Shown here one piece after another: positions 3,942 through 37,300 of a stretch of 64,000 nt of DNA. The stretch is taken from positions 145,444 to 209,443 of the IMG/VR virus record IMGVR_UViG_3300043446_003193; one strand, written 5' to 3'. Every line of letters starts with the position of its first letter. Position 1 is the first letter of the stretch. The notes under the pieces were generated by a model. That model saw only the letters and a program-made list of their open reading frames with translations. It was not told the origin of the DNA and searched no databases. Made by a program: the position numbers and the translations under genes.

Positions 3942-3950
3942 TATAAATAT
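3942..3950 (-). promoter_or_regulatory. Late-promoter-like motif ATATTTATA (one of about 15 copies)
   Basis: Recurrent intergenic motif upstream of structural genes; see findings. Confidence 0.65.
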
Positions 3951-20100: not shown

Positions 20101-21224
20101 TGTGCATTTTTTTCAGCATCAGATTTTAATTCTACACCAGATAATTTTTGTTCTGGAGGCGGACCTTGTTGGGTATCAGAATCGGTTCCTATTGGAGAAG
20201 TTTTTTCTTTATCTATTTTTCCTTGAGTGGTTTGTCCTTGTTTTGTTGGTTGTCCAGGCTCAGATGGTTTAGCTGCTTGAGTTGCTGCTTTTCCAGGTTC
20301 TTCTTTTTTCTTTGGTTGATTAGCAGGAGCATCGGCTGGCCCAGCTATTTTAGCAGCTTGAATATGTGCAGGATGCTCTTTAGGTAATCGTAATGCATCT
20401 CTTGCTTTAATTTTCTTTTGTTGTCCTTTTGAATTTGTATATGTTATATCAACGTCTAATGCAGGATTTTCAGCTTCTCCAAAATATTGATTTGTAAATT
20501 CTTCAAACATTTCATTGGTAATGTAGTTTTGAATTATTTCAGAAATAGGATCATATACATAATCATCGTCTGTTGTAGCTACTGCTCTAATTTCTTTATT
20601 CTTTTTTTCAATAGCCTCTACATCTTCTTTTGAAGGGTATCCTCTATATAATTCTTCGTTAAGTTTGGTTGTTATCATTTTGAATATTTCTCTATCAAAT
20701 TTTGGATATGCTTTTAAGAAAAACTTTTTAGCTTTTTCTTTATCATTACTTCCCAATCCTTTTCTAACTTGAGTTCCACTAATTGGATTTGGTTCTGGAG
20801 GGATAGGATATGTATAACCAATTTCATCATAACCATATCCAGATTTTCCGTTATATGGTTTGAAATATTTACCTTGTAACCTTGTTGCATCTTTTTCACC
20901 AACTGCTGCAATATAAGCAGTAGTTTTTCCATCAAACTTTCCAAGTATTTCTACCGGTCTATATGGGTTAGAAACTTTAACAAATTTTGAAGCAGGAACT
21001 CCAAACATTGTAGTTGCTATTTCTTTTTTTTCTTTAAAAGTAAATGGTGATTTATCTGAAGATGTATCATTAGAACTTGCTATATAGACATTTGCTTCTC
21101 CAAACTGAGAAACTAATCTTTGATACGCATCATAATGTCCTCTGTGAAATGGTTGAAAACGACCACCGTATATTACGATAGTTTTTTTAACCTCTGGTTT
21201 ATTCACTTCTTTTATTAAATTCAT
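17139..21224 (-). CDS. 1361-aa multidomain protein: HxGH nucleotidyltransferase + HExxH metallopeptidase-like + ATP-dependent ligase-like domain
   Basis: GGRFQPFHRGH and ISGTQVR; RTLAHEMVH..Q; EKTDG, NIEVI, LVFH, EGLVF, YKLTG ligase-superfamily motifs. Confidence 0.75.
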   Translation of the reverse strand: MNLIKEVNKPEVKKTIVIYGGRFQPFHRGHYDAYQRLVSQFGEANVYIASSNDTSSDKSPFTFKEKKEIATTMFGVPASKFVKVSNPYRPVEILGKFDGKTTAYIAAVGEKDATRLQGKYFKPYNGKSGYGYDEIGYTYPIPPEPNPISGTQVRKGLGSNDKEKAKKFFLKAYPKFDREIFKMITTKLNEELYRGYPSKEDVEAIEKKNKEIRAVATTDDDYVYDPISEIIQNYITNEMFEEFTNQYFGEAENPALDVDITYTNSKGQQKKIKARDALRLPKEHPAHIQAAKIAGPADAPANQPKKKEEPGKAATQAAKPSEPGQPTKQGQTTQGKIDKEKTSPIGTDSDTQQGPPPEQKLSGVELKSDAEKNAQKEKSGNTKEGQVKRIQEKVKNWSKEEKQTFSKLLNKKEGHDERRSWGQAIMDKAKGAGHAIMHGLKHEYDTFKTAGSSVKTLMAGGKLDDKQKKALKSVGIKIATTALFAAVGGGLAHGAAGLVKHTAMELIPHAVTEVVATGVGKAAIFAEDIDEASALNIFAAAIAERIENMDITPEIAEKIADSWNNKKMISKFSLNENLSETKQQSIQHFVEFATKRLKLKETPNVTLVGGREFAEVKTSLGGYNPEDKSIYVATEGRLTADILRTLAHEMVHRKQDELGLVRNLEKDGADGSPIENQAHAVAGILMREYGRINKQIYNENVNETIKKVGDKYVVYPKNGGDRLGTHDSLASAKKQLAAIEINKEDVNVDVDTGDTILMGKFKNKKVQVKDIGKDDHGMPTINGRQATTFRKIDEMGSNDVHFKNLIDAYKNSTFRKRINAYLFGNPNGYKANDVARSLRNMGYDEITKMEKELNIKPNFDEQISKLYEDIEMYINEISGLADADSQADGAYLPKGHTRKLDADDGVNKGDDWYYSGGYTQMDFPIADAIWGDEDETQYTVKYSARNLPRFDEKPTEFLKEGLLMEGGAYGHMSHPFDDMDLTFGHLKDIVTKALNGDLGVVREKTDGQALAISWKNGRLIAARNKGHLSNGGASAMGIEDVASKFGGRGGLTDAYNYAMKDLSAAVSALSQKQREKVFGEGTKFMNIEVIWPTSVNVIPYGQALLVFHNCIEYDEKGNAVGKVDGAESVLAGMIKQVNADVQSKYTIQGPPITEIPKSEDLSSKQSKYLSKISKLQSEFGLKDSDNVADYHQSWWDWWITSNAPVKVDKLTKEALIRRWAFGDKSFRLNTISNPKLQDWAMNNDKVNVAKQQKDNIKPFEEIFLGVGADVLEFVGSVLTVHPDKAIRSMKSRLKTVADQVKTSGNPAQIQKLKQELSRLNRLGGIERIVANEGLVFFYNGKTYKLTGTFAPLNQILGIFYE

Positions 21225-21277
21225 GTCTATAAATATCTTAAATGTTGTACTTTTAGCTTTTTAGTAACTTTTTTAAT

Positions 21278-21309
21278 CAAACATAGTGAAAATTTTTGAA
21301 ATTTCCAAT
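21278..21309 (-). promoter_or_regulatory. Bacteroidota sigma70-type promoter (ATTG-N20-TATGTTTG)
   Basis: Perfect TAnnTTTG -7 element; a late motif also lies at 21228-21236. Confidence 0.6.
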
Positions 21310-22697
21310 TAAAGTTTTACATTTATCATCCAAGCATTTTCTGCAAATTGTTCTTTTGATACTAATTCGTATTGAACTTGATTTATACCATCTTCCTTAT
21401 AATTTATTTTTCCTTCCTGCATTTCCTTAACAAATCTTCTTTCGTTTTTTGCAGTTGGTTCACCCTTTATCCATTCTCCATTTACAAATCCCTCACTAGG
21501 ATGTGGTAATGCGTAAAATCTTCCATTTCTTCTATATGGTGTATTATTACTACTTACTTTAAATGTTTCATTTGTTATCTCTACATTATGTATCAATAAA
21601 TCAGAAATTACATTATTTTTATCTTTTAAAAAATCAGATATATTTTCAGGTAAAACTACATCATTGTAAATTTTAATATCTGCAATCTTTCCTTTTAAAT
21701 AATTTGCTATAATTGGATTACATTCACTGCATGGATTTTTACCAATTAAAATATCATTATTATATTTTTTTAATTTACCTTCAAATTCATGCGGTTTATA
21801 TTCCAATGTTTCTGTTCTTGTATTTTTAATTAAATTACTATTACAATAAAAATATATTTTATTTTCTTTAGAGTCTACCGAAACTGTTATCCATGTCCAT
21901 TCTCCAAATCCTCTTTTTATCCATGCATAAATTTGATTATCGTTTTGAGAATATAAAGAAGCGGATATTGCTCTAGAATTATTAAATCCTATAAAATAAG
22001 ATTCTTTTTTATCTATACTTAAAATTGGATATTCTACATATCGTTTATCTTTTATACCTATTAACCATTCTTTATATTTTTCAGGCTGATCTTCAATTTT
22101 ACACAAAATAGATAATGTATGTGATTGGGATAATAATTCCGATATACCAGTATCTTTTGGAATCGTTATATAAGAATTCTCTCCATCAAAATTAAAACAA
22201 GGAATATCATTGTATTCAAAAAATAAATTATCTTCTGTTAATCCTTCAAAACGACATCTCCAAAATAGGTCATCATCTTCCATACCCCAATCCCAATATT
22301 CATTAGAGTAACCATTTGTTGCTTCTACCTGTTCTTTATTCATTAATACAACACCACCGAAGTATTGTTCATAGTTTAATCTATATTTGTATTTAGATAC
22401 GGCGGTTGCAATATGTGTTGGAAACTTGTCTGGATATGAATAATCACAACTATCGTTTTCCGGTAACATATCTACATCGTGAAAAGCAACATAATCACAT
22501 CCATCTTCAAATGCATGTTTGGCTGCAATATTTTTCATCGCACCTCTATTGAATAATTTATCATCCGTTTGGTGTACAATATAAAATTGATGTGGAATTC
22601 CTTTTTTGTTTAAAAATTTTGTAAGATGAGGAACTAACATTTTAAGATGATATTCCCTATCTCTATAAGGAACACATATTCCGAGTTTTTTTATCAT
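21309..22697 (-). CDS. GT7 (beta-1,4-galactosyltransferase-like) glycosyltransferase with inserted LamG/ConA domain
   Basis: VPYRDR, FNRG..KN, HDVD, YFGGV, NGYSN.YW.WG.EDDD; insert FDGENSYI...W..ITV...IGK...LKGKIADIKIYN. Confidence 0.85.
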   Translation of the reverse strand: MIKKLGICVPYRDREYHLKMLVPHLTKFLNKKGIPHQFYIVHQTDDKLFNRGAMKNIAAKHAFEDGCDYVAFHDVDMLPENDSCDYSYPDKFPTHIATAVSKYKYRLNYEQYFGGVVLMNKEQVEATNGYSNEYWDWGMEDDDLFWRCRFEGLTEDNLFFEYNDIPCFNFDGENSYITIPKDTGISELLSQSHTLSILCKIEDQPEKYKEWLIGIKDKRYVEYPILSIDKKESYFIGFNNSRAISASLYSQNDNQIYAWIKRGFGEWTWITVSVDSKENKIYFYCNSNLIKNTRTETLEYKPHEFEGKLKKYNNDILIGKNPCSECNPIIANYLKGKIADIKIYNDVVLPENISDFLKDKNNVISDLLIHNVEITNETFKVSSNNTPYRRNGRFYALPHPSEGFVNGEWIKGEPTAKNERRFVKEMQEGKINYKEDGINQVQYELVSKEQFAENAWMINVKL

Positions 22698-22699
22698 AA

Positions 22700-23164
22700 C
22701 TATTTTCCTTTAGGAGACACATAAATTGTATCTCTTATAAGTATTTGTTTTTCCGTATAAGGAGCATATACGGATGTATTATAACATTTAATATCTAAAA
22801 AATGACCAGCTTTTGTTGTTGGCATATTGACATATTCTATATTATTTATTTCTATTTCATTTAATTTATAATCTAATATTTTTATATTATTTCCTTCCTT
22901 TATTTGGGTATATAATTCATTTATTCTTATTTCCAATATTTCATCTGATTCATTTTTATATAAAACATATGAATCTGGATGAAAAATAATTCCATCAATT
23001 TTGTAATAGTTTGGTTCTTTCAAAACTTTAGTAAACTCTATTGTTGCGGTTTTATATTTTTCCTCAACAGGGCAATATCCTGTTAATGAGTTTACCTTTG
23101 GCTTTAAATCAATAATATTTTTAATTATTAATTCGTTATATTTTATATTCTCAAATAAATTCAT
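22700..23164 (-). CDS. Hypothetical protein, possibly a degenerate stand-alone Hint domain
   Basis: 154 aa; colinear similarity by eye to the adjacent Hint domain (see findings). Confidence 0.4.
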   Translation of the reverse strand: MNLFENIKYNELIIKNIIDLKPKVNSLTGYCPVEEKYKTATIEFTKVLKEPNYYKIDGIIFHPDSYVLYKNESDEILEIRINELYTQIKEGNNIKILDYKLNEIEINNIEYVNMPTTKAGHFLDIKCYNTSVYAPYTEKQILIRDTIYVSPKGK

Positions 23165-23166
23165 AA

Positions 23167-26100
23167 TTAAGGAGTTATTTTACCACCTGGCCCTAAAACG
23201 TTGTGTACTAATATATTATTTGCAAAGTAAGTATCATTTGTTTCAACATCTAATGAAATAAATTCATCTAATTCATCAACTCTTATTTTTTCTTCAATCA
23301 TTTCCCAGTTACCATCTAAATTATACATCATATCACCAACTATAACGTCTTCTGCTCTTAAAAATTTATATTCATTATCTCTTTTTATAAAAATAGGATG
23401 TTCAAAAGTTATTTTTAATTTATCATTTATTACATAATGATAATGCCAGACTCCACTTGTAACAGATTTTACGGCACTCATAGAATCTACATAATCAAAA
23501 GTATTTGTAGAAAATGTTTTCCATGCATCTTCTTCTTCAGAAAATCCATCAATAGAAATATTTTTTAATAAATCCCCTTCTATCAAATCTTCAACATTTT
23601 TTTCACTACCATCCCACATTAAAATTTTTGTACCTTTTGCTAAACACGTTCCGCCACCTGTACAATCACAACCTGCTCCTGTGTATTTATATATCAAACA
23701 AGAGGAATTTGCTGTTCCAGAACACCCACTTTCAGATACTGCATATATTTCATAATATATTGGGTTATCACATGCAATACTACTTATACTAAAAGCATAT
23801 GATGTACCAAATGAACGAGAACCTTGATTTAATATACTACCTTCCGGTCCATAATCAAATGTACATTTATACCAAACTACATAATAAGTCGCCGCATTTT
23901 GTGCGTTTGCAGTACCTGTTCTGGAAAATGCGTATGTTAAAGTACCACAAGTTGGAGTATCCAATGAAACAGTAGGTGCAGTTATATTTCCAGATGCAGC
24001 TACTGCATTATATGAAATTGCACTATTTGTTGCGGTTGTTGATAATAATGTATCTGATGAATTATATATTTTCGCTCTAAAATACATAGTAGTACCACTT
24101 GTTAGTGATATAAAAGCAGCATAATTAGTATTTGCTGTAATACTTGTAAATGTTTCTGCCGCCGTCCAAGTTGAATTATCCGTACTTTTTTCTATTACCA
24201 ATTTTGTAGCAGTATCAATTTGACCAACCGAATATGTAGCAGTTACTCCACCACATACTACTGATTTAGATACAAATGATAATGTATTTACTACACCTCT
24301 ATTTCTTAATACAATATAATAATCAGTTCCTTGAGAAGTATCTGTTGATGATTTTTGCCCATGTATACGATATGTAGTTGTTACTCCTAAAGTAGCACTA
24401 CTTACAACTCTTGCAGCTAAATAGTAATTACCATTTGTATATGGTAGACTGTTTCCAGAAGTATCACCTGTATTATATAATTGGAAGGTTTTTATATTTA
24501 GCGCACCTTCACCCTGTTGTGGAGATGTATTATCTGCTGTTTCCCAAAGTCCATTATATGTGTTTTGAAACATTCTAAACATACCATATGCGCCGGTTCC
24601 TGGTGCATTTCCGGAATCTACTGATACTGTCATTGTAGTATACGCACCTGGGAAATTACTCCAAGTGTATTTATTATCCATTGATAATACGGTATGTATG
24701 GATGCCAAAGCCTTTGTGTTCGGTTCTAAATTATCAAATGTAATTACAGAAGAATTTGTACTAAATGTACCGCCAGTTCTACCACTCCAGGTATCTAAAT
24801 TTATAATTCTAGTAGGAGTATATGTTGGTCCTTGATATGCGTATATACCATATAGTGTTGCAGGGGTATTTAATGTAAAAGTATAATCTAAATCTTCAAC
24901 TAATTGATTTGCAGTCCAACTAGAATATTTTATTGTACCCCAGTCATCGGTTGCTTTTACTCTCATTTTATATGTACTACCAAAACTCAAACCAGTAAAT
25001 GTAATACCCGATTGTGTTGTAAGAACAGTACCATTAGTATCTGCTATTTGGTATTCAACTGTTATATTATCAGCAGTTAAATCAATAGTTCCATCATTTG
25101 AATCATATGTTAATAATCCTGCATATATACTCATTTCAGTATATCCTTTTGTAAATGCTACACTAGGAGTTCCTGTTATTGATGCTAATCTTTTACCCTT
25201 TACTGTTATTGAAATATCTTTAGACCTTTCACTACCAGCATTAATATATAAAGTCCATGCATTAGTTGTACCGGAGTAAGTATATAAGTTACCCCACCAT
25301 GTATAAGTTACTGTTCCTCTTGATGAAGAACTTAAAGTAGTTTTTGATGTTGTTGCCAACTTTCTACAAAATGTAGTACTGGTATTTGTTCTTATCAAAT
25401 AAGTGCCATTATACGGGTTTGCACCATTAAAACTAAGTGGAGATGCTTGCATTCTATTATTATCTAACCAAACATACCAATATCCACCCTGTGAGTTTGT
25501 CTCAGTTGGACCGTTTGTTGTATATGATGCATCTAATGTAAAATTAACTCCTCTAATAGCATATCCGTCAACAAACCCACTTCCTCCTTTTACCACATCA
25601 ATTGTTCCAGGTTCTCTAGTAACAGTAACTGTTTTATTAGTTAAAGTATGATAATAATATAATCCTGAACTTATTGTATATGTTAAATAAACCGAACCAT
25701 ATCCATCACCAATTGTAGATGAATTACAAATTGCATCATATAAACTAAGTGCAGAAAAAGAAAAAGAAGCTACTGAATCTGGGTCTATTTGTGCATCAGT
25801 TAAACTTTGTCCTCCCGCACTTCCCCCATTTGGATAATATGCATCCAATCTTGCAGATATTTTAGTGAAATTGCCAGATGATCTGGTTACTGAAAAAACA
25901 ACAGACTGAACTTGAGAAAGTGTACCGGAATTTATGTTAGATGTTAAAGAATATCCGTATCCTTGATTTGGATACCCATATACTGTCACACTTGTTTCAT
26001 TAAAATCAGATTGTCTATATGTACCACCAGATGCTTTTACATGATAATACCAAGTTTGATCAGCAGATGGAGCAGTCCAACCATTATGTGCTGTTGTATA

Positions 26101-27963
26101 AGTACCACTATTCAAATCTGCATAAGTTCCTCCAGACCCTACTTTGTATTGAAAGTTATCATAAGTAAATGCAGTTGCTAATGATTTTGTTATACTAATA
26201 GAACCATTTGAATATTCTCTTCCAGTTACCCAACTTGCACCCAATCCAATTTGACTTTGATTTATTTTAAAACGAACACTAAAATTATCAGTTAATACAA
26301 ATCCATTTCCATCTGTAATTGTGGCCGTATGTGTTGATGTTCCATCATTTGCAGATGTCGCAGGATTATTAACAGTTATAGTAATTACTCCAGATGCCGT
26401 TTTTGCTCCTGATGCGGAAACCGTGCTATCGGTTGACGTAGCAGAAACACTTGTAACAGAAAATCCATTATCATTTGAACCATTAATAGTAACCGTTCCT
26501 GTAAAAGTTCTATTAGCTCCTGTTAAAACATAATCTTGATCATCAATTGTTAAAACTCCCTTTTGTGGTATTAATATATCTCCGGTTTCTGTATATCCGG
26601 ATACAAATGTAGAATTGCCATCGCTTCTTCTTGCTCTTACTCTTGCTTTTGCATATTGTGCAGTTGTAGTTTTACCTGCAATAGTTACCGAAGGTGTTAC
26701 ATTTGTACCGGCTGCAACCAAAGAAGTCCATGCTCCATAAGAACCACCACTATCTTTAACAGCATAATCTATATCATAATTTAAAGTAGTTCCACTTACA
26801 GCTGCAGTCAAAGCAGTGACCGTTACACCAAATGATTGTCCAAAAGCAGAATATGCTGCACTAATAGATGGTGAAACCATAGCAACAGTTACATTCGTAG
26901 TTGTATGATTTCTAACACTACTATTACTACTATTTGTAATATTTACTCTAAGAGATTGACTACCTAAAGTATTATAATAAATTGATAAATTTTGAGAAGT
27001 TGATGTAGAAATACTTGCTCCTGTTAATACCCAATTATAAGATATTGCAATAGAATCGGGATTATATAAAACTGTTGAAGTAACAGAATATGCAACAAAA
27101 GGTTCTACACTCGTAGAAGCACCAATTGATACCGCCATTGGTCTTCTAAATGTAGTTGCCGTAGTACTTGCCGTATCAAATGGGTTTGCCGAATCTTTGA
27201 CCACAATAGTATAATCATCATCGGCCGTATTACTTGAATTATTAAAAGTTGCAGTATTTACATCTGCAGAACCATAACCTGCTCCATTAAAATTATAATA
27301 ATACGGAGAAACACCACCTGCAACATTCACAGTAAAATCTACGGAACCGGTAGTATAATTATACGTTCCTGCGCCAGTAAATGATGGAGAAGTTGTAACT
27401 GATGTAATTGTTAAATCAACTGCATTTACAAAAACTGTTTTAGAATCATTTGCTTGTTTATTTGAAGAGTTTATTCTAAGTTCTAATCGTAATGTGTTTG
27501 TAGAATTTGGTACAATATATGTATTACTATTATCAACATAAAAGTCAGAAGCATTAGTTACATTTCCGGTAAGAGTTGCAGGAAATACATTTGTTCCAGT
27601 ATATACACCATTTACCCAGATTTTAATATATGCCGTTTCTCCGGACTGCATACCCGTCACAGTATATGTAAAATCTAATCTTTTACCTGATTGAGCATTT
27701 GTATTAGCAGGACTAGTTAAAGTATTTATTGTAATTGCAGGAACTTTACCTTCAAATTCTACAAACTCATATTGACTTCCAGTAGGCCTTGCTCCAGTAC
27801 TTGGGTTTAATACTCCGACAGTATTTGGTAAATCTCTGACAGTATTTGGGTCAACTGTACCGGTCAAAAATTGATTTGCAACATATGAACCACTTACTGT
27901 CGTAGTTGCAGTGTTAAGACCGGCAGAAGAACCTAAATCTCCAATTCGTATATTACTTGCCAT
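23167..27963 (-). CDS. Long Ser/Thr-rich fibre/adhesin (Ig/FN3-like beta repeats) with C-terminal Hint (BIL/hedgehog-like) domain
   Basis: Beta-rich T/S/G composition; GGGT/CLAKGTKI...TFEHP...SLDVE...YFANNILVHN at 23200-23646. Confidence 0.8.
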   Translation of the reverse strand: MASNIRIGDLGSSAGLNTATTTVSGSYVANQFLTGTVDPNTVRDLPNTVGVLNPSTGARPTGSQYEFVEFEGKVPAITINTLTSPANTNAQSGKRLDFTYTVTGMQSGETAYIKIWVNGVYTGTNVFPATLTGNVTNASDFYVDNSNTYIVPNSTNTLRLELRINSSNKQANDSKTVFVNAVDLTITSVTTSPSFTGAGTYNYTTGSVDFTVNVAGGVSPYYYNFNGAGYGSADVNTATFNNSSNTADDDYTIVVKDSANPFDTASTTATTFRRPMAVSIGASTSVEPFVAYSVTSTVLYNPDSIAISYNWVLTGASISTSTSQNLSIYYNTLGSQSLRVNITNSSNSSVRNHTTTNVTVAMVSPSISAAYSAFGQSFGVTVTALTAAVSGTTLNYDIDYAVKDSGGSYGAWTSLVAAGTNVTPSVTIAGKTTTAQYAKARVRARRSDGNSTFVSGYTETGDILIPQKGVLTIDDQDYVLTGANRTFTGTVTINGSNDNGFSVTSVSATSTDSTVSASGAKTASGVITITVNNPATSANDGTSTHTATITDGNGFVLTDNFSVRFKINQSQIGLGASWVTGREYSNGSISITKSLATAFTYDNFQYKVGSGGTYADLNSGTYTTAHNGWTAPSADQTWYYHVKASGGTYRQSDFNETSVTVYGYPNQGYGYSLTSNINSGTLSQVQSVVFSVTRSSGNFTKISARLDAYYPNGGSAGGQSLTDAQIDPDSVASFSFSALSLYDAICNSSTIGDGYGSVYLTYTISSGLYYYHTLTNKTVTVTREPGTIDVVKGGSGFVDGYAIRGVNFTLDASYTTNGPTETNSQGGYWYVWLDNNRMQASPLSFNGANPYNGTYLIRTNTSTTFCRKLATTSKTTLSSSSRGTVTYTWWGNLYTYSGTTNAWTLYINAGSERSKDISITVKGKRLASITGTPSVAFTKGYTEMSIYAGLLTYDSNDGTIDLTADNITVEYQIADTNGTVLTTQSGITFTGLSFGSTYKMRVKATDDWGTIKYSSWTANQLVEDLDYTFTLNTPATLYGIYAYQGPTYTPTRIINLDTWSGRTGGTFSTNSSVITFDNLEPNTKALASIHTVLSMDNKYTWSNFPGAYTTMTVSVDSGNAPGTGAYGMFRMFQNTYNGLWETADNTSPQQGEGALNIKTFQLYNTGDTSGNSLPYTNGNYYLAARVVSSATLGVTTTYRIHGQKSSTDTSQGTDYYIVLRNRGVVNTLSFVSKSVVCGGVTATYSVGQIDTATKLVIEKSTDNSTWTAAETFTSITANTNYAAFISLTSGTTMYFRAKIYNSSDTLLSTTATNSAISYNAVAASGNITAPTVSLDTPTCGTLTYAFSRTGTANAQNAATYYVVWYKCTFDYGPEGSILNQGSRSFGTSYAFSISSIACDNPIYYEIYAVSESGCSGTANSSCLIYKYTGAGCDCTGGGTCLAKGTKILMWDGSEKNVEDLIEGDLLKNISIDGFSEEEDAWKTFSTNTFDYVDSMSAVKSVTSGVWHYHYVINDKLKITFEHPIFIKRDNEYKFLRAEDVIVGDMMYNLDGNWEMIEEKIRVDELDEFISLDVETNDTYFANNILVHNVLGPGGKITP

Positions 27964-30900
27964 TAGATAAAACCTGTTTTAAAGTATTTACTTCTTTTTT
28001 TAAATTTTGTATTTGTTTAACCATAATTGGAATTAGTTCATTATATTTTATGGTTAAATACTCTCCCATTATTCTTCCATCTGTTAAATTTGGATATATT
28101 TTTTCAACATCTTGTGCAATAAATCCATAATGTTTTTTATTTTCACTATCAGAATTCCAACTATATGCAACCGGATGTAATCTATCCATATCTTCAATTT
28201 CAGTTTCATCTATATCAACTATATTTTTTTTCAATCTTATATCAGAACTAAGTGATGTTGAAAAACCGGCAATATCACCTTTTACATGCAATTCTCCATA
28301 GTGAGCAAAATATCCTGCAGATTTTATATTTGCATTAGCAGCTGTTGGTGTAGCAATATCTTCAACTTTAAGAAAATTACCAGTACTATCCTGTGAACTA
28401 TTAAATAATGCCTGTAATCCTCTTTCTGAAATTTCTACTTGTTTTGTTAATGAAGTAGCTGTTAAAGATAATCCTTTTGCATAATAATTTGTTGAAGATG
28501 GTGAATATGAATCTACTCCAATACTTTCTGCCCAAATTGCATATCCAGCTGGTATAGTACCAAATCCAAATAAAGTAAATGAATCATAATAATCAATATG
28601 CCATCTTGTTTTTCTATAATTCGCAACCAAACCATTTGATTTTGTAGTGGATATTTGTAATGGGTTTGTTGTTTTACCAAGAGTTATAAATTGAAAAGAA
28701 GTATCTGCAAATTCTTCTTGAGTACTTGTAGTAGATGGAGAAACTGTTCTAGAAATTGAACCAATTGATGTTCCACCATAAGATAATGTACTTGTTACAG
28801 TTGCAGTACCAGTAACCGAATCAAAAGAAGTATAAAAATCAATATATTGTCCATCCATTTGTGAAAGAGTAGTATATGATGTTCCTTTTTTAGTATTAAA
28901 ATATGATATAAAAGCAGTAACAGCTGCTTCAGCACTACCACCTATCCATCCTCTAGTGATAGAAGAATAATAATTTAAATTCGTTGGGTCTTGACTTAAA
29001 TTATATTTTATATGATATGCAATATTTAGAGCTGCTTGATCAACAGTTGAAAAAGTACCAGTAGAAGCTACATATGTATACTCCATTGTTGGAGCATTGT
29101 TCCATTCTAAATCAATTCTATATTTAACCGATGCGTTAATTGAATATGTTGATGTAGCAGATAAACTGGTATACATATTAGTACTTGTTGCCGACAAAGT
29201 AGCTACCGTAGAACCATTAACATTATACAAATACAAATTTTGTGGTGTTGAAGTTCCTATACTAAAATAAGTTTGAGCGGTAGTTGCCGTTATTGCACTA
29301 CCTGCTCCTGGAACTGTTGTTAACAATTCACCTGGATGAATAAGTACACGGTTTCCTGCATAGGTACTTTCCCCTGTAATTTGAATATAATTATCAGCCC
29401 CAGTTCCTCCAGCATTTAAAGTAATTTTATCTTTAGAAATGCTATTTTGACCAATAACCCACCCACCAATAGTACCATCAGTAGCAGTTATTTTTCCAGA
29501 TATGTTCGCGTTGGAAGCTACTAAAGCACCTGCAGTATCTACTCTAAATGGAGCAGAGTTAAATGCCGTATTACCCGCATGAAATCCTGCAATTGACATT
29601 ACCGCTTGTGAATTACCGGATGAATTACCTGCTATTACTCTTGATTGACCACCATCTAATATCACACCATTTGTTGCAGTACCACCAATTAATTTTCCTG
29701 CTTGAATTTCAAATCCACCAATTGATCCAGTTTGAGCAGTTAATGTTGTTGCAGATATTGCACCACCAATATCAACTATATTTGTTGCAGATGCATCGTA
29801 TTTAAAATAATTACTACCACTAACAAAACTTACTTTTGGTACAAATGAACTTCCACTAATTCCTAACCAAATACCATTAGTACCATATGATTGAACTCCT
29901 TGACCTATTGAAACAAATGGTTTGGTAGTTCCACCTGCTAATGTTATATTTGCAGCAGAACCAGATGCATTAGTACCAATATTTAAAGTATTTTTAACAT
30001 ACGATTCATCAAATATTGCAATCTTAGCTGCAACAAAGAAATCTTGTGTTCCCAAATATTCCCAATAAGAATTGCTTGCTCCATCGGTAGGTGCATTTCC
30101 AGTTGTTTGCTGTAATGTTGCGTAATATTTTGTAACACCTCCTGAACTTTGATAAACGGCATCTCTTCTTGAAGAACCCGCAACAGTTGTGTAATAATAA
30201 GTTGTGCCTGCTGCATATTCTCCTCTTAACACAATACCAGGACCCGTCGCTCCGGTATTTCCATCAGTACCATCCGATGAAACATTTACATTATGTGTTT
30301 TATAAAAAGTTGTAGAAGTTCCTTCCGAATCTACATATGATCCGGTAATGCTTACAATTAATCCACTTGTAGAAGATGGTGTAGAAGGTGTTATTGTTGT
30401 ATATCCATCACCATCTACACCGGCATTTGTACCATTTGTTACAGAAGATATTCTAAATGAAGGTATAACATATGGAGAAGTGGCATCATACGCATATGCA
30501 CTACCACCTTCATTTACATATAATTTAAATGAAGAAGGAGTACCATATGAACCTGCTGTACTTTTTGTAATAGTTTGTCCATCTTTTTCAATTGATACAA
30601 CTACCGCCGGTGGTGCCGCTAATGCTTTAGAAACGGTAGCTACAACATTTTTAGTACCAGATGTACCTTCACTATCGGTATAGTTTACAGGTATTGTTAC
30701 TTGAGCAGTTGAACCAGTTATTGAAGATGCCGTTGATGTTATTGTTATAACATTTGACGAAACTGTTCCTGCCAATCCATTTGTATATGTTGGTGTACCT
30801 ATTGAAGTAAATCTACTTGTACCAGATTCCAAAGCAGTTATCGTTAATGCGGTTGGAGTAGCAGAACCACTTGTTTTTGAATTTGCATTTATTGATTGTG

Positions 30901-33900
30901 CAGATGGAGATACTGCTACTAATACATTTGGTGTACCTGCTTTAGCTTTTGAATATGTTACTAATTTTACAAATGTACTATCACTTCCTCTACCATCTCT
31001 GTAAGTTACTTTTAAATTTATACTACCACTATCAGCGGATAACGCGGTTATAGAATAGTTGTTATTTGTAAGTACTGCTGTTACATTTGAAGATGATGAA
31101 ATACTTGCACTAAATTTATTGTTTCCAATTGTAGATGCGTATGAAATATCTTCACTTCCAACTTTTACTGATATAGAACCACTACTTGCTAAAAACCCAC
31201 CAAAAACAGTTCCACCAGAATATGCAGGAAATGTTGTATTTTCGTTTGATACTGTCACTGCAATTTGTGATTCAGCTATTACCGGAGTAATTGTAATTGT
31301 ATCACTATAAACTGCATTATTTAAATCATAAGCAGTAAATGTATATGTTGTTGCGCCAGATGAATATGAATAATCACTACCATTTATACTATATGATTGT
31401 ACACCGGTGGTATTATTGTTAGAACCAACGGTCAAAGCTGGTTTACTACTACCACTAGTTACAGTAATTTCATTTGTAGTACTTCCTAAATTATTTCTTT
31501 TTACATCAATTGTTATAGTTTGTCCAGATGGTGATAAACTCAAATCGGTCATTTTATAAAAAAACTGATTAGCGTTAGAAACTGCATTTAAGTTTTTACT
31601 CTTATCACCTTTTAATACACCTTCCAATTGTACCGAAGATGAATATCCTCCTTTATTAAAATAATAAGTTCCTTTATGTGTAAGTTGGGTAGGAGTAGCA
31701 TATGACCAAGATGCTACATTTGTACCTAGCATTGCAACATCGTGTTGATCATCTCCACTAAAAACACGATAAACAGACTCGGTAGATTTTCCTATATATT
31801 CGGTAGATATTAAAGCTAATTTTGGTAAATAAGAACCAGAAGTTATGTAAATACTACCAGAAACAATGTTATTTGTTAGCTTTATATCAATAAAATCATT
31901 AAGTTGTGCAGGAACATTATTATCGTCTGGATCATACACAAATTGATTTTTATTAGCAATTGCAATGAAATTTTGACCATCAATACCATCTGCACCAACA
32001 GCTCCTTGATCAACTCTATAAATGTTTACCAAATCTCTTACATCTTCGCAAGATGCCGTATATTGAACTCTACTAATTTTTGATGAAGATATTGATCCAG
32101 TAAAATTAGAAACCAAAAGAGTTGCGGATGTTTCCGTTACATTTGTTAATAAACCAGGATAAAAAGGTTCAGATGCATAAACCGATGGATTAATGTAATC
32201 ACCATTTGCATCAAATGCTGAAGAGTAGAATGTTACAGAACCGGTTAATCCTATTTTTGAAATATCAAAATTTATTGAAGATACTCCAATTGTTTCTCCT
32301 GAGCCAGAAAAACTAAATAGTGTATTATCTGGAGTTACTGTTAATGATTTTTGAACAATTGTATCTGTTCCACCAGTAAATGTAATTTCTTTTTCTAAAG
32401 TAACAGGTACATAATTGTTATTAATATCGTAAAATTCAAAACGAAAATCGTAAGTATCATTATTTACTTTAGTCGGAACATTTACATTTAGAGTAACTTC
32501 ATTAGGAGAAAAGTTTGTTTCTTGAGAAGCTCGTAAACTTATGTTTGATAAATACCATTCTCCTTGATGAATATTAAAAAATATTTGTCCCTGCCCATCA
32601 GTATCTGGTTTAAAATTTATTTGTTGTTTATCAAATCTTCTAAAAGATTCACTAACATTAAATTCACCTAAAAGTTTTCCATATCCAAGATCAGAGTCCT
32701 CAACTACGAATGCCGGTCCAACACCAAACACATTTAATTTTCCATAACCAAAAGAAGATGATTGCAATAAAAGACTGAAATCTAATTGATATTCAGTATT
32801 ACTTAGAAAATCAATATCATTGTGATTATAAAAAACTCTCTGTGGATGTTGTGTTGTATTTAAAGTATTATCGTCTTGTAGTTTTACTGAAGATGCTAAT
32901 ACTGAATCATTTTGTGTAGCAGTATAATATGTATTTTCTTCATGTTTTTTATATTTCCAAAAATCATCTATTATTTTTTGAGATGAAAATTGTCCTATTC
33001 TAACATTTACACTTCCACTATATGCATCAGTTTGAAATAGTTCATTTGATTCTAACTGAATATCTTCTAATAAACTATAATTTCCAATATCTGATTTTCT
33101 TTTACCAAATATTTTCAAACGATTTACATCACCACTAAATGTTTCCAAATTAGCTATTTTTATTTTAGCATAAGAAGAACTAATTGCAGAGTTTGTTAAA
33201 GTTACACTTTCGTTATATGGTAATGTAAATGATGCGGAAGAAAAATCAGTTACATATTGTACGGCGTTTGTGGCATTTGAAGATGTTTCATAATAAGGAA
33301 TTGTTGCTAATGCTTTTTTAGAATTAACAACATCTTTTATAATTGTAGAATATGATTGATTTAATCCAGTTATCGTAATTGTTTCACCTTCCATAGATGA
33401 TGAAAAATTACTTCCACTAATTTTTAATTCATAAATTGTATCACCTTTGAAAGTTCTAAAATTTGAACCAGATGTAGGTTGTACCGAAACACCATCAACA
33501 CTTCCACTAATAGTTACTCTATTTACAGTTCTATTGTATATTGGTAAAATTGTTTCAGTTATATCTACCGTCGGTCTACGATAGAAACGAATCTTTGTTG
33601 TATTTGCAATAATAGGATTTACATTCACTACTTTTTGCCATCTAACATTATATTGATTTTCCCAGTTTGAAGGGATTGGTGTTAGTAATCCATTAGCATC
33701 TTCATATTCACTTAATTCTCCTAATATAGTAATTGTACATGGACCAAATGCAGTATCTGGATAAACATATACTGCCACTACTTTTGAAGTTCCTTCATAA
33801 TATTCAGGAATACCTTCTCCTGGTTCGTGATAAATTACATTTCCTAATGCATCTTTAATTTCTATCTTTATAAGAGTATCGGCAACTAATTCAGGAGAAC

Positions 33901-34048
33901 CCTGAATTAAAAAAGAGTTTTTACCACCAGAAAAAGTTCCAGGTAGTTCGGTGATTCTAAAGTATCTACTATTTGGATCAGTATCTTCTAAAAATATATT
34001 ATATCTCTCTAAATTTTCTGGAAATAGAGTCTTTTTAAGAATGGCCAT
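27953..34048 (-). CDS. Long tail fibre with C-terminal peptidase S74 intramolecular chaperone
   Basis: SDIRLKKNI...PV.Y.W...GFIAQDV..IYP...YNELIP.MVKQIQ.L; GSIGGF/GTIGGW fibre repeats; short Gly-X-Y stretches. Confidence 0.88.
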   Translation of the reverse strand: MAILKKTLFPENLERYNIFLEDTDPNSRYFRITELPGTFSGGKNSFLIQGSPELVADTLIKIEIKDALGNVIYHEPGEGIPEYYEGTSKVVAVYVYPDTAFGPCTITILGELSEYEDANGLLTPIPSNWENQYNVRWQKVVNVNPIIANTTKIRFYRRPTVDITETILPIYNRTVNRVTISGSVDGVSVQPTSGSNFRTFKGDTIYELKISGSNFSSSMEGETITITGLNQSYSTIIKDVVNSKKALATIPYYETSSNATNAVQYVTDFSSASFTLPYNESVTLTNSAISSSYAKIKIANLETFSGDVNRLKIFGKRKSDIGNYSLLEDIQLESNELFQTDAYSGSVNVRIGQFSSQKIIDDFWKYKKHEENTYYTATQNDSVLASSVKLQDDNTLNTTQHPQRVFYNHNDIDFLSNTEYQLDFSLLLQSSSFGYGKLNVFGVGPAFVVEDSDLGYGKLLGEFNVSESFRRFDKQQINFKPDTDGQGQIFFNIHQGEWYLSNISLRASQETNFSPNEVTLNVNVPTKVNNDTYDFRFEFYDINNNYVPVTLEKEITFTGGTDTIVQKSLTVTPDNTLFSFSGSGETIGVSSINFDISKIGLTGSVTFYSSAFDANGDYINPSVYASEPFYPGLLTNVTETSATLLVSNFTGSISSSKISRVQYTASCEDVRDLVNIYRVDQGAVGADGIDGQNFIAIANKNQFVYDPDDNNVPAQLNDFIDIKLTNNIVSGSIYITSGSYLPKLALISTEYIGKSTESVYRVFSGDDQHDVAMLGTNVASWSYATPTQLTHKGTYYFNKGGYSSSVQLEGVLKGDKSKNLNAVSNANQFFYKMTDLSLSPSGQTITIDVKRNNLGSTTNEITVTSGSSKPALTVGSNNNTTGVQSYSINGSDYSYSSGATTYTFTAYDLNNAVYSDTITITPVIAESQIAVTVSNENTTFPAYSGGTVFGGFLASSGSISVKVGSEDISYASTIGNNKFSASISSSSNVTAVLTNNNYSITALSADSGSINLKVTYRDGRGSDSTFVKLVTYSKAKAGTPNVLVAVSPSAQSINANSKTSGSATPTALTITALESGTSRFTSIGTPTYTNGLAGTVSSNVITITSTASSITGSTAQVTIPVNYTDSEGTSGTKNVVATVSKALAAPPAVVVSIEKDGQTITKSTAGSYGTPSSFKLYVNEGGSAYAYDATSPYVIPSFRISSVTNGTNAGVDGDGYTTITPSTPSSTSGLIVSITGSYVDSEGTSTTFYKTHNVNVSSDGTDGNTGATGPGIVLRGEYAAGTTYYYTTVAGSSRRDAVYQSSGGVTKYYATLQQTTGNAPTDGASNSYWEYLGTQDFFVAAKIAIFDESYVKNTLNIGTNASGSAANITLAGGTTKPFVSIGQGVQSYGTNGIWLGISGSSFVPKVSFVSGSNYFKYDASATNIVDIGGAISATTLTAQTGSIGGFEIQAGKLIGGTATNGVILDGGQSRVIAGNSSGNSQAVMSIAGFHAGNTAFNSAPFRVDTAGALVASNANISGKITATDGTIGGWVIGQNSISKDKITLNAGGTGADNYIQITGESTYAGNRVLIHPGELLTTVPGAGSAITATTAQTYFSIGTSTPQNLYLYNVNGSTVATLSATSTNMYTSLSATSTYSINASVKYRIDLEWNNAPTMEYTYVASTGTFSTVDQAALNIAYHIKYNLSQDPTNLNYYSSITRGWIGGSAEAAVTAFISYFNTKKGTSYTTLSQMDGQYIDFYTSFDSVTGTATVTSTLSYGGTSIGSISRTVSPSTTSTQEEFADTSFQFITLGKTTNPLQISTTKSNGLVANYRKTRWHIDYYDSFTLFGFGTIPAGYAIWAESIGVDSYSPSSTNYYAKGLSLTATSLTKQVEISERGLQALFNSSQDSTGNFLKVEDIATPTAANANIKSAGYFAHYGELHVKGDIAGFSTSLSSDIRLKKNIVDIDETEIEDMDRLHPVAYSWNSDSENKKHYGFIAQDVEKIYPNLTDGRIMGEYLTIKYNELIPIMVKQIQNLKKEVNTLKQVLSNGK

Positions 34049-34060
34049 TAATCTTTTTAC

Positions 34061-34098
34061 ATAAATATTCTCAAAAAAATAATCTTCACATATTTATA
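34061..34098. promoter_or_regulatory. Back-to-back ATATTTAT(A) motifs for the divergent fibre operon (-, 34061-34068) and RHH gene (+, 34090-34098)
   Basis: Motif orientation follows gene orientation. Confidence 0.65.
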
Positions 34099-34100
34099 TA

Positions 34101-34150
34101 AAGAAAACTAATAAATACTATATTGTATTATAGAAAACTAAAGAAAACTA
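34101..34150 (+). repeat. Phased 10-bp direct repeats WAGAAAACTA (operator-like)
   Basis: Copies at 34101, 34131, 34141 plus a degenerate copy at 34111, all in 10-bp phase. Confidence 0.75.
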
Positions 34151-34158
34151 AATAAGTT

Positions 34159-34344
34159 ATGAAATACGCAATGTTGCAAATTAAAAAAGAAACCCATGAA
34201 CTTCTCAAATCATATTGTGAAGAACACGGGTTTAAAATGGGTAGTTTAGTTGAAAATCTAATCAAAAAACACGTTGGTGTTTCAAAACCTCAATCAGGTG
34301 TGTTGAAGGCTGATAAAGTTACTGTTAGAAATCAATCTTACTAA
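34159..34344 (+). CDS. Ribbon-helix-helix-like DNA-binding protein
   Basis: AMLQI strand + ETHELLKSYCEEHG helix + MGSLVENLIKKH helix; only credible plus-strand gene. Confidence 0.7.
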   Translation: MKYAMLQIKKETHELLKSYCEEHGFKMGSLVENLIKKHVGVSKPQSGVLKADKVTVRNQSY

Positions 34345-37300
34345 ATCCATTCTCTTTTTTTATTTCTATTAATCCATCTACGATATCTCTCATAGCATCT
34401 AAGTGAGAAATAACCCAAATGAAATCAAATTGAGTTTTAAGATATTGCATCATTCCGAATAGGGATGATAGATTATCACTATCTAATGTACCAAATCCCT
34501 CATCAATCACTAAGAAGTTTGGTCTAGGTAATCCACATATGTTTATCAATGCAACTCTGATTGCTAAACCACTAATAAACTTTTCCATACCACTACACAT
34601 TTCTAATGCCCATTCTTGATCCTCGTAAACTATCTTTGCGTTGATATTCTTGCCATCTACTTCCATTACAACCCCGAAATCAACTACTTGTCCTAAGATA
34701 TTATTTACTTCCGTTTGAATAACCGGTAATGCTTTAGAAATTAATTCATATGGAATACCATCTCTCTTTACAGCATCTAAATAATAGGTGTATAGGCGGT
34801 TCTTTTCTTCTAAATCCTTAACTTCATCCATTTTAGCTTTGATACCGTCTATAAACGATTGCAATTGAGAAATAGAACCATTTACAGAAGTTATATCTTT
34901 ATTAATTTGTTTAATTACTTTATCAACTTCTGATTTAAGAATTTCTTTTTCTTTAATTTGTTTTTCTAATTGTTTGTTTGTTTCAATTGTATCTTCGTTT
35001 TCGTAATATTTTTCAATATCTTCTTCAACTTTATCCAATTGAGTTTGTAATAATTCTTCTTTTGTTTCTAAACCTTTGTATTCCATTTCGGCTTTCTCTA
35101 ATATAACTTTTATTCTGGAATATCTTGTTTTGATTTCTTGTAATTCATTATATTGTTCTTCTACACCTTCCATAGTATCCAATGTTTGTTGAATACCTGT
35201 ACAATTAACCAATGCTTCTCTAAATTCTTCTTTCAATTGAGGTAATAATTCTTTTACTCTCATTGCATCTTTTACAAAAGTATTATCACAACAAAACTCA
35301 CAATTTGGGTCGTATTTATGATTATTCAAATGTGCAATCGTTTCTTCTGCAGAACTTACATGCACTTTTGCAATATCATAAGTTTTAGTTGCTTCGGTTA
35401 ATGCTTTTTGTTCTTTTTGATAATTTGAATATGCCGTTTCAATATCAACGCCGCCAAATGATTTCTTATCTTCTATTGATTGTGATAATTCATTAAGGGT
35501 ATTGGTATGATTTTCTATTTTAGTTTCAGTATTGGTATATTCCGTTTCTAAATCTTCAATTTGTTTTGTAATTAATTTTCTTTTATCTTCCAAAGTGGGT
35601 AAATCTAAATTAGAATCAATTGGTGCAAGTTGTCTTGTTAATCCTAACACCTCGTTCTCAATACTTTCTTTTATTTTTGCTTCAGAATTTAATTGTTGTT
35701 GTAATTCTTTTAATTCACCTTTTTTATATTTAATCTCAATACCTTTATTTGCCAATTCTGTTGTAAAATCAGTTTTCTTAAAATTTTTGATAAGAACACT
35801 TACTTCTCTAATATCTTCTACTGCTGTATCAAACAACTTATCAAAGATATTCAATCCCATAAATTGTGCCAATAAATCTTTTCTTTCACTTTGTGATTTA
35901 TCAATGAATAGTGCATTATTCCCTTGCAGAGATAATGCAGTTAATACGAAATCCTCATACTTACCAACATATTGTTCAATGATGGTGTTTGTATCTCTTC
36001 TTTCTGTTCCATTAAGTGAAGTTCTTTCATCTCCATCCATTTTATAGAACTCAACATCTACTTTTACATTCTTTCCTTTGTTGATTGTTTTAGCAGTTCT
36101 TTCAATAAAATATCTTTCACCATTAATATCAAATTCTAACTTACATTTGAAATCGGTTTTACGATTATTCATTATGTTTGCTGCTTTGAATGCTCTACTA
36201 CTCTTATCGTATAAACAAAATGAAATAGAGTCAAATAGAGATGATTTACCACTTGCATTTGGTGCAAATAATCCCATCAATCCGTTTAATTTACTGAAAT
36301 CAATAACATTGTCCTCACCATAGGAGAACATGTTACTAAACTCAAACTTTATAGGTTTCCATTGGATATTTCTTGCAACATCATCTAATACAATTCTACT
36401 ATTAATATCTCTATTGATTGTTTCCAATTCAGATAAATCTTTATCTGTCACAAATGGCATCATTCTCTTAACATAATCATGTATTAAAGAGTTTTGATGG
36501 TTTACATCTGTAATATCTTCAAAATCTAATTTGTTTTGTCTATTTCCGGTCTTTAATTTGGAAAGTGAATCCGTTCTAATGATTGTAAAATCTTCAAGTC
36601 CGTATCTCATCTTAATTTCTGTCAATACTTTCTTTGTATCGGCAGTATCGGTATTAGATAAACGAACTCTCAATCTTGCATTCTTTGGCATATTGTTTAC
36701 AACCGGAACTACACCATTATCTACATCCAAAGTATAATAACCATAATCGTTTGGTAAATCAACACTCTCATAAGTTAGAGTATCCATATCCCAAACTAAG
36801 AAACCATGTTTATCTAATGTTTCACCGAAGTTTTGTTGAACCAATGAACCAGCATAAACTACCTTACAACCTGCCGGACTAATCATCTCTTGTCTTTTAT
36901 GAATATCACCCAATAGAGCTAAATCATATCCATCAAATATATCGGTTGTAAAATGTCTACTACTAACCACATAACCCACATCCGTAATAGAATTATCCAC
37001 GGGGCCGTGGAATAATGCAATCTTTGTTTTTGCATCAATATCTTCTGCTTTAGGCCAATTATCTTTATTATCAAAAATAGAATAAACAGCGAATGCAGTA
37101 TCACCATATTTCCAAACTTGTGTATCTCTTAAATAATAAAAATTATCCAAATTCAATGCTTCTACAATTGGAGTAAGAACATCAATTCTATCCAAATTAT
37201 TCATATTACAATCGTGATTACCTGTAATAAGAATTGTAGGTGCTAATTTTGCACACTCCGTAAATAACCAACTAATCTCTCTAACTAATTCAGGAGACAT

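Follow-up and report, generated by a model that had tools for sequence, protein, structure and literature searches.

A fibre operon of an uncultured freshwater phage ends in a GT7 glycosyltransferase with an inserted LamG-like domain

We analysed a 64,000-nucleotide stretch of DNA (the window), positions 145,444 to 209,443 of the IMG/VR virus record IMGVR_UViG_3300043446_003193, and in particular a four-gene operon at 21309-34048 that encodes two large fibres, a 154-amino-acid (aa) open reading frame (ORF) and, as its last gene, a family 7 glycosyltransferase (GT7; P0001) with a LamG-like domain inserted into its catalytic fold (Table 1). The record comprises 209,443 bp, is 100% complete according to CheckV, has a GC content of ~30% and is ~5% non-coding; the window represents its final 64 kb. 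All window genes of at least 120 aa are encoded on the minus strand, the exceptions being a few short plus-strand ORFs nested within longer genes.

Apart from the operon, the window encodes a T4-type terminase large subunit (TerL), a baseplate wedge protein, a DnaG-type primase, a T7-type endonuclease I and an SbcD-SbcC fusion. The nearest cultured relatives of TerL are those of Flavobacterium phage 'immuto' (54%) and Microcystis phage Mel-JY01 (53%), and a sequencing-run search detected window DNA in freshwater metagenomes from many studies, with all of the runs with stronger matches being freshwater. Based on gene content, TerL relatives and occurrence, the source is an uncultured freshwater myovirus-like jumbo phage. 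It looks lytic, with no integrase seen in its annotated parts, and a Bacteroidota host is a plausible guess only. The phage may belong to, or lie near, the 'moraphages', aquatic phages of 200-307 kb that have four core groups of glycosyltransferases and for which Flavobacteriia are the predicted hosts (PMC12619734), and one homologue of P0001 was found on a 307,943-bp contig.

Table 1. Features of the fibre operon and of related elements. Positions are those of the window unless a prefix is given.
Feature	Position	Strand	Remarks
Candidate late-type promoter element ATATTTATG	34060-34068	-	one-base variant of ATATTTATA; 11 nt before the fibre 1 ATG
Fibre 1 (P0004, 2031 aa)	27953-34048	-	23.7% Ser+Thr; phrog_1980 tail fiber protein, E 8e-17
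Peptidase_S74 chaperone/self-cleaving domain, fibre 1 residues 1935-1988 of 2031	28085-28246	-	58.6 bits (cut-off 22), E 7.8e-16
Fibre 2 (P0003, 1598 aa)	23167-27963	-	26% Ser+Thr; weak fn3 match
Hint/bacterial-intein-like (BIL) domain, fibre 2 residues 1440-1588	23200-23646	-	Cys1 to terminal His-Asn
154-aa ORF (P0002)	22700-23164	-	small stand-alone family
GT7 enzyme (P0001, 462 aa)	21309-22697	-	last gene of the operon
GT7 N-terminal part (P0001 1-154)	22236-22697	-	FNRG, DVD (D74/D76), YFGG, WGMEDDD
LamG/pentraxin-like jelly-roll insert (P0001 ~155-389)	21531-22235	-	~235 aa
GT7 C-terminal part (P0001 390-462)	21312-21530	-	resumes at RNGRFYALPH; nearly invariant His399
Exact ATATTTATA before the following gene (17139-21224)	21228-21236	-	downstream operon boundary; start of the next transcription unit
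SbcD nuclease and SbcC ATPase, fused (1048 aa)	34325-37471	-	62-90% identical in relatives; useful lineage marker
Laminin_G_3 inside a 1677-aa protein	42056-47089		only distantly related to the insert of the enzyme
Stand-alone 283-aa Laminin_G_3 protein	G000:C1:107870-108328 (L103 1459-2310)		just downstream of another S74 fibre
Second glycan cluster	G000:C1:50420-62005 (L020 4421-16006)		two GT2, methyltransferase, HAD and NTP-transferase fusion, GT4, P0125-like

A fibre operon behind a structural-gene motif

The genes of fibre 1 and fibre 2 overlap by 11 nt (27953-27963), and the two later junctions are gaps of 2 nt each (23165-23166 and 22698-22699). This layout is exactly as claimed in an earlier reading of the window made from its letters alone (the sequence-only reading), and the identical overlap and gaps recur in a 78-84% identical relative from a different sample. 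The same reading placed one late motif ahead of the operon, and the variant ATATTTATG indeed stands there. Genome-wide, ATATTTAT[AG] is matched 41 times on the coding strand and only twice on the opposite one. Although so little of the genome is non-coding (~5%), 33 of these 41 matches fall within the 70 nt preceding an ORF start. The ORFs concerned are mostly those of large genes with a structural look, another S74 fibre among them; it is this association from which the label 'late' derives. Copies of ATATTTATA in the window, e.g., at 3942, 11257, 14161, 17122, 21228, 40085, 42029 and 47101, lie 12-65 nt before ORF starts. As 21309-34048 contains no ATATTTAT[AG] motif and the next copy stands ahead of the gene after the operon, a fair reading of the sequence is that the four genes form a single transcription unit of the structural-gene type. 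ATATTTATA is a candidate late promoter, unlike the TATAAATA of T4. The T4-type element was rejected as the motif of this window, where it is not enriched (19 found versus 18.7 expected).

A second upstream motif, TTTGGTAAT ... TTTTCGTAT(A/C)TT, occurs at window positions ~13065, 37470-37500, 59902 and 62440 before another set of genes, including the primase, and may be the mark of a further temporal class of genes. A 61-aa ribbon-helix-helix-like ORF (34159-34344, plus strand) diverges from the fibre operon; it is the one plus-strand gene of the window that looked convincing, has a weak Pfam match to RepB-RCR_reg (E 0.0017) and was likewise called in a relative. Within the 110-bp spacer (34049-34158) there are three copies of TAGTTTTCT (6 in the window versus 1.7 expected) as well as an exact ATATTTATA pointing toward the 61-aa gene. 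A possible role of the 61-aa protein would be that of a repressor of the fibre operon.

A GT7 fold interrupted by a LamG domain

P0001 matches both Pfam halves of the family far above the cut-offs, Glyco_transf_7N with 74.8 bits (cut-off 27) and Glyco_transf_7C with 73.3 bits (cut-off 23), and a Laminin_G_3 match lies between the two. The domain search thereby confirmed the insertion proposed in the sequence-only reading and, together with the conserved catalytic residues, its view of an intact GT7 as the final operon gene. The closest solved relatives by sequence are beta4GalT7 (3lw6, E 2.6e-36) and beta4GalT1. In an AlphaFold2 model based on an alignment of 30 family members (predicted local distance difference test, pLDDT, 87), Foldseek superposes the first ~155 residues on beta4GalT7/beta4GalT1 at 1.5-2 Å, and the alignment to beta4GalT1 extends to residue 462, with a complete GT-A catalytic fold that can be superposed on both animal enzymes. 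D141 aligns with the residue of beta4GalT7 that the mutant entry 4lw3 (D211N) identifies as the catalytic Asp. Across 30 orthologues and paralogues, FNRG, DVD, YFGG, W-G-x-EDDD and His399 show little or no variation, and the same holds for the individual residues D74, D76, E140, D141, D142 and H399; in the C-terminal part R389, L397, H399, D436 and G437 are conserved. By sequence correspondence, His399 is the putative metal-binding His.

Comparison with bacterial GT7s shows where the fold is interrupted. All 13 bacterial proteins that we checked (12 stand-alone ORFs of 219-354 aa and an 882-aa fusion) have ~5 residues where the phage enzyme carries LamG. Residues 390-446 of P0001 align to residues 162-211 of an uninterrupted bacterial GT7 (E 3e-6); local BLASTP was used for this C-terminal comparison, as global MAFFT misplaced that part. 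The Foldseek alignment, the ~5-residue bacterial counterpart and the alignment of 390-446 together indicate, at the level of sequence and model, that the catalytic GT7 fold is whole and that the LamG domain is a true insertion. The sequence-only reading had the fold break directly after WGMEDDD for ~200 aa; while the LamG-like nature of the insert and the resumption at RNGRFYALPH hold, the break lies ~12 residues later, past the next helix, and the insert is longer than had been estimated (Table 1). On one side it is flanked by the helix that follows WGMEDDD, on the other by the strand that supplies His399, and by residue mapping the insertion point corresponds to residues ~331-338 of bovine beta4GalT1, a position which we take to be directly N-terminal of the metal-binding Met/His and of the long, flexible loop by which donor and acceptor are covered. 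The nearly invariant Tyr112 of YFGG presumably corresponds to the beta4GalT1 Tyr that favours Gal over GalNAc, which we regard as a lead only.

A hydropathy scan of the genome's ORFs revealed no hydrophobic segment in P0001, and neither a signal peptide nor a membrane segment was found. Because the protein also starts directly at the catalytic domain, it is expected to be cytoplasmic. Judged by its sequence, P0001 is a soluble inverting GT7 of the beta4-galactosyltransferase-like type, with donor and acceptor being predicted.

The insert has both the Laminin_G_3 match and a jelly-roll (concanavalin A-like) fold. Its mean identity among orthologues is 42%, compared to 76% and 66% for the two core parts, as would fit a specificity module with predicted ligand binding. 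Matches of the insert to botulinum-neurotoxin binding domains reflect the shared jelly-roll fold only and were dismissed, with nothing toxin-like about the protein. The stand-alone 283-aa LamG protein of the same phage is, like the LamG of the 1677-aa protein, only a distant relative; it shows 23% similarity (E 0.03) to the insert, so that there is no sign of a recent LamG capture within the phage.

A word-seeded search retrieved 1,857 relatives of P0001 (clusters at 90% identity). Among the 120 matches listed, most are 445-510 aa long and covered over their full length, and none carries a functional name. All GT7-LamG relatives found come from contigs of uncultured phages or from phage-looking contigs of metagenome-assembled genomes (MAGs). 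Full-length copies among 185,579 species genomes are confined to a handful of phage-looking MAG contigs, all other matches being uninterrupted bacterial GT7s. None of 50,697 GenBank phage records matches the region (megablast) or P0001 (tblastn), PHROGs and NCBIfam contain nothing for P0001 or P0002, and in BFVD the only viral matches are giant-virus GT7s without an insert, with no tailed-phage GT7 among them. A third paralogue, at L003 6777-8231, lost both the EDDD motif and the His, indicating that the family includes inactive copies.

Uninterrupted bacterial GT7 genes are widespread in many phyla, and chlamydial copies (L028-L030: Parachlamydiaceae, Waddliaceae) are closest to the phage core, with 50-53% identity. 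One deltaproteobacterial copy (L035 5971-8616, Desulfomonilaceae MAG) is fused to a C-terminal region of ~600 aa.

GT7, LamG, S74 and Hint modules as well as phage self-glycosylation are each already known. New are the GT7 fold with LamG inserted at the base of the acceptor loop, the very large phage-only GT7 branch, and the residence of this branch in fibre-adjacent glycan islands of aquatic phages. We found no paper on a phage GT7 or on glycosylated tail fibres in the literature.

Hint-ended fibres and glycan islands

The C-terminal Hint domain of fibre 2 has matches in PDB (phmmer: KlbA intein, E 3.6e-5; BIL domain 2lwy, E 8.8e-4), and its Pfam matches to Intein_splicing (18.6 versus 35.8) and PT-HINT (17.9 versus 27.7) remain below cut-off. 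Cys1, T-x-x-H and H-N are invariant in six Hint-end sequences, down to an identity of 29%; in this most distant case, a Flavobacteriales-MAG contig (L027), the Ser/Thr-rich Hint-ended protein directly precedes a glycan island. Only four long proteins share the fibre 2 Hint end in the word search, and a 40% identical fibre 2 homologue occupies the equivalent position in L017. Ten residues follow H-N in fibre 2 and 3-10 across the sequences, the +1 residue being Val or Ile. With so short a tail and no nucleophile at +1, self-cleavage is likely rather than splicing, by analogy with S74 release. A Hint domain as C-terminal module of a phage fibre was not found described in the literature.

The sequence-only reading had assigned a (pseudo)Hint domain to the 154-aa ORF. 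Hint is well supported at the C-terminus of fibre 2, and P0002 as a pseudo-Hint is an unproven lead; a role as fibre-assembly helper is equally plausible. Hhalign of P0002 against the fibre Hint profile gives a probability of 0.1%, P0002 has no match in Pfam, NCBIfam or PDB, and its positional homologue in L017 has no Hint match. An exhaustive profile search yielded nine representatives of the family, all stand-alone and ~130-154 aa long, some of which start with a Hint-block-A-like string without Cys. The best fold matches of the P0002 model (pLDDT 57.6) are inteins at a non-significant E of 0.1-1, and complex prediction of P0001 with P0002 scored 0.00, which is no evidence either way. At L017 5416-10004, the fibre 2 homologue ends Cys-stop and the next ORF, the P0002 relative, starts Hint-block-A-like without Cys; from the sequence, this arrangement resembles the outcome of splitting a fibre-Hint fusion.

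Gene context was read in 18 IMG/VR loci and further contigs. In the conserved order, SbcCD is followed by an S74 fibre, small Ser/Thr-rich proteins, a DUF6734 protein, a methyltransferase and a GT2, and then by two to three tandem GT7-LamG paralogues, after which come radical-SAM enzymes and repeated DUF7796-like (P0125-like) genes. These islands of 10-20 genes are located just downstream of the fibre module and, in most relatives, are preceded not by a Hint fibre but by proteins of 150-180 aa with 30-33% Ser+Thr. Co-occurrence with Hint fibres, a check suggested along with the sequence-only reading, is seen for the closest relatives and L027 and not for most of the relatives read here. Further island genes encode DegT, UDP-glucose dehydrogenase and mannose-1-P guanylyltransferase (weak Pfam matches), and others have SGNH-like or epimerase/dehydratase-like C-terminal motifs as read by eye. 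A hydrophobic segment is present in only 3 of 277 ORFs from the 18 related loci, indicating that the islands represent soluble chemistry without export machinery of the Wzx, Wzy or WecA type.

The phage of the window has retained a single GT7-LamG gene at its fibre site, the only island gene left there. A second glycan cluster is found elsewhere in its genome (Table 1), and one of the two GT2 genes in it carries a GT7C-like segment. A family of ~250-300 aa with faint similarity to DUF7796 (phrog_13607) is represented at window position 62820-63659 (minus strand), by two copies in the genome, and by up to six tandem paralogues in relatives' islands; such tandem copies occur in L004, L006, L007 and L019. 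It may be a new sugar-modifying or sugar-transferring family.

The gene that follows the operon, at 17139-21224 (minus strand), has its own ATATTTATA motif and encodes a 1361-aa protein with an N-terminal NMN-adenylyltransferase-like HxGH domain; an HExxH and a C-terminal K-x-D-G ligase-like motif were recognised by eye only, and Pfam finds nothing past the first domain. We considered this gene as a sugar cytidylyltransferase and rejected it, as NCBIfam places its N-terminus with the NMN adenylyltransferases.

Candidate acceptors and related systems

Glycosylation of the phage's own virion is the best fit to the conserved placement after fibre genes, the coupling to them, the structural-type motif, the lack of export genes and the closest solved relative, which extends a protein-linked sugar. 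We consider virion glycosylation overall to be probable, by a modest measure, and for the fibres as the acceptor the case is nearly balanced, falling slightly short. The enzyme would be made late and in the cytoplasm, alongside the fibres, and would use a UDP-hexose, most likely UDP-Gal supplied by the host; no Epimerase-family gene was found in the genome, indicating that the phage has no UDP-Gal supply of its own. The sugar would go onto an acceptor that is linked to virion protein, with the fibres as the likeliest target, and the fast-evolving LamG beside the acceptor site could serve as a built-in acceptor- or glycan-recognition subunit, functionally like alpha-lactalbumin on beta4GalT1. 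In relatives, the enzyme would work within the 10-20-gene island directly after the fibre genes. The phage's own two GT2, GT4, methyltransferase and HAD-NTP-transferase genes count toward this reading. Of the late virion-modifying enzyme that the sequence-only reading had proposed, the fibre operon, the GT7 and the lack of ThyA (see below) and export genes are in favour, and its late expression is suggested by the motif association. Glycosylation of the fibres and substrate selection by LamG, also proposed there, are hypotheses. A precedent is virion glycosylation in mycobacteriophages (Freeman et al. 2023, PMC10527164, as cited in PMC12619734).

Several observations weigh against virion glycosylation. 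The second glycan cluster lies ~105-116 kb from the GT7 gene, and no ATATTTATA-type motif was found between genome positions 50415 and 86101, a placement that may leave the pathway without co-expression. All synteny comes from one lineage, with SbcCD 62-90% identical, so that the loci are not independent and may reflect inherited gene order instead of functional coupling. A Ser+Thr content of 24-26% is usual for fibres, the downstream NMNAT-like gene is unrelated to sugar activation, and host glycans linked to lipid can also be substrates of soluble glycosyltransferases, on the inner side of the membrane. The sequencing-run search detected the window in DNA metagenomes only and in no RNA runs, and no proteome data were found.

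The enzyme and the islands of its relatives could instead remodel the host envelope, by modifying precursors of lipopolysaccharide, capsule or glycoproteins at the cytoplasmic face for export by the host, and so block superinfection or the re-adsorption of progeny to debris. Phage glycosyltransferases that alter host surface glycans are well known, uninterrupted GT7 homologues occur across bacterial phyla, soluble glycosyltransferases can use undecaprenyl-linked acceptors without phage membrane proteins, and the other glycosyltransferases of this phage lie in the region that has no late-type motif. Nevertheless, we regard host remodelling as rather unlikely: the gene is the translationally coupled end of a fibre operon behind a structural-gene motif, the islands have no initiating phosphoglycosyltransferase, flippase or polymerase, and late in the lytic cycle of a phage that looks lytic and has no visible integrase in its annotated parts, there would be little time for export. 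Less likely again is that virion proteins other than fibres (capsid, decoration or sheath proteins, or the relatives' small Ser/Thr-rich proteins) are the acceptors and that the operon position is a remnant of the island location. This idea draws on those small proteins, which precede most islands in place of a Hint fibre, on the lone island gene left at the fibre site and on the mycobacteriophage targets, which are capsid and tail tube (Freeman et al. 2023, as cited in PMC12619734), but the tight fibre coupling is conserved in the closest relatives, and a Hint-terminated, Ser/Thr-rich fibre stands directly before the island even in the distant relative L027.

Modification of phage DNA would have the enzyme transfer a hexose onto a modified base for restriction evasion, as phage glycosyltransferases of several folds do with hydroxymethylated bases (Pyle et al. 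2024, as cited in PMC12619734). PF00303 (ThyA-type thymidylate synthase/hydroxymethylase) was not found in the 209-kb genome, while the family was detected in 10 control genomes. Since the phage thus has no ThyA-family hydroxymethylase and the gene lies among late structural genes and not replication genes, DNA glycosylation is disfavoured and we consider it very improbable; moreover, the closest solved relatives use sugar acceptors, with beta4GalT7 acting on a protein-linked sugar. Equally little weight goes to a non-catalytic role as a lectin-like assembly factor or virion component on a kept GT7 scaffold: the paralogue without EDDD and His is compatible with such a role, whereas P0001 and nearly all relatives retain FNRG, DVD, YFGG, W-G-x-EDDD and the His.

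Virion glycosylation could also involve the Hint domain of fibre 2. In a manner resembling Hedgehog, with a glycan replacing cholesterol, the Hint thioester might be resolved by a sugar or glycan hydroxyl, yielding a covalently glycan-capped fibre tip whose glycan the co-transcribed GT7-LamG would build or extend. We put this forward as a long shot; if true, it would represent a new chemistry for making a receptor-binding tip.

If the enzymes do glycosylate virions, self-glycosylation would extend beyond mycobacteriophages and giant viruses and be common among abundant phages of fresh and marine waters, which would bear on host recognition, particle stability, grazing and aggregation. The fusion of GT7 with LamG represents a natural glycosyltransferase with a built-in, predicted recognition module, and ~1,857 clusters at 90% identity make up a large, unannotated branch of the 'eukaryotic' beta4GalT family in phages. 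Although no phage of this lineage is cultured, the family offers an expressible handle for testing phage glycosylation.

Compared to the animal beta-1,4-galactosyltransferases (GT7; beta4GalT7 3lw6/4irp, beta4GalT1 1tvy/1nf5), P0001 is phage-encoded, lacks the N-terminal membrane anchor and stem, carries the ~235-aa LamG at about bovine residues 331-338, and has a donor and an acceptor that are predicted. In lactose synthase, alpha-lactalbumin re-aims the acceptor specificity of beta4GalT1. The likeness to this system is an analogy only, drawn from the insertion point: there, a separate module at the acceptor side changes specificity, whereas LamG is covalently inserted, has an unrelated fold and sits at the base of the same loop region. 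The uninterrupted bacterial GT7s (Parachlamydiaceae, Waddliaceae, Steroidobacter, Planctomycetota) share 40-53% identity with P0001 1-154 and a recognisable C-terminal part, and differ from it in their compact stand-alone ORFs, where the short linker takes the place of LamG. Giant viruses glycosylate their own fibrils with virus-encoded pathways, and their GT7s (the Mimivirus LCMiAC01 galactosyltransferase A0A481YZG5 and the Megaviridae GT7-like A0A5J6VLB6) share the catalytic N-terminal part with P0001 (E 3e-12 to 1e-11) but have no LamG insertion and serve viruses of eukaryotic hosts. S74 domains of the endosialidase type and BIL/Hint domains are self-cleaving elsewhere; fibre 1 has a bona fide S74 domain, and fibre 2 a Hint domain with Cys1, T-x-x-H and H-N. 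Finally, in mycobacteriophages, which differ in glycosyltransferase families, phage lineage and hosts, glycans have been demonstrated on capsid and tail tube (Freeman et al. 2023, PMC10527164, as cited in PMC12619734), whereas here virion glycosylation is proposed from the genes.

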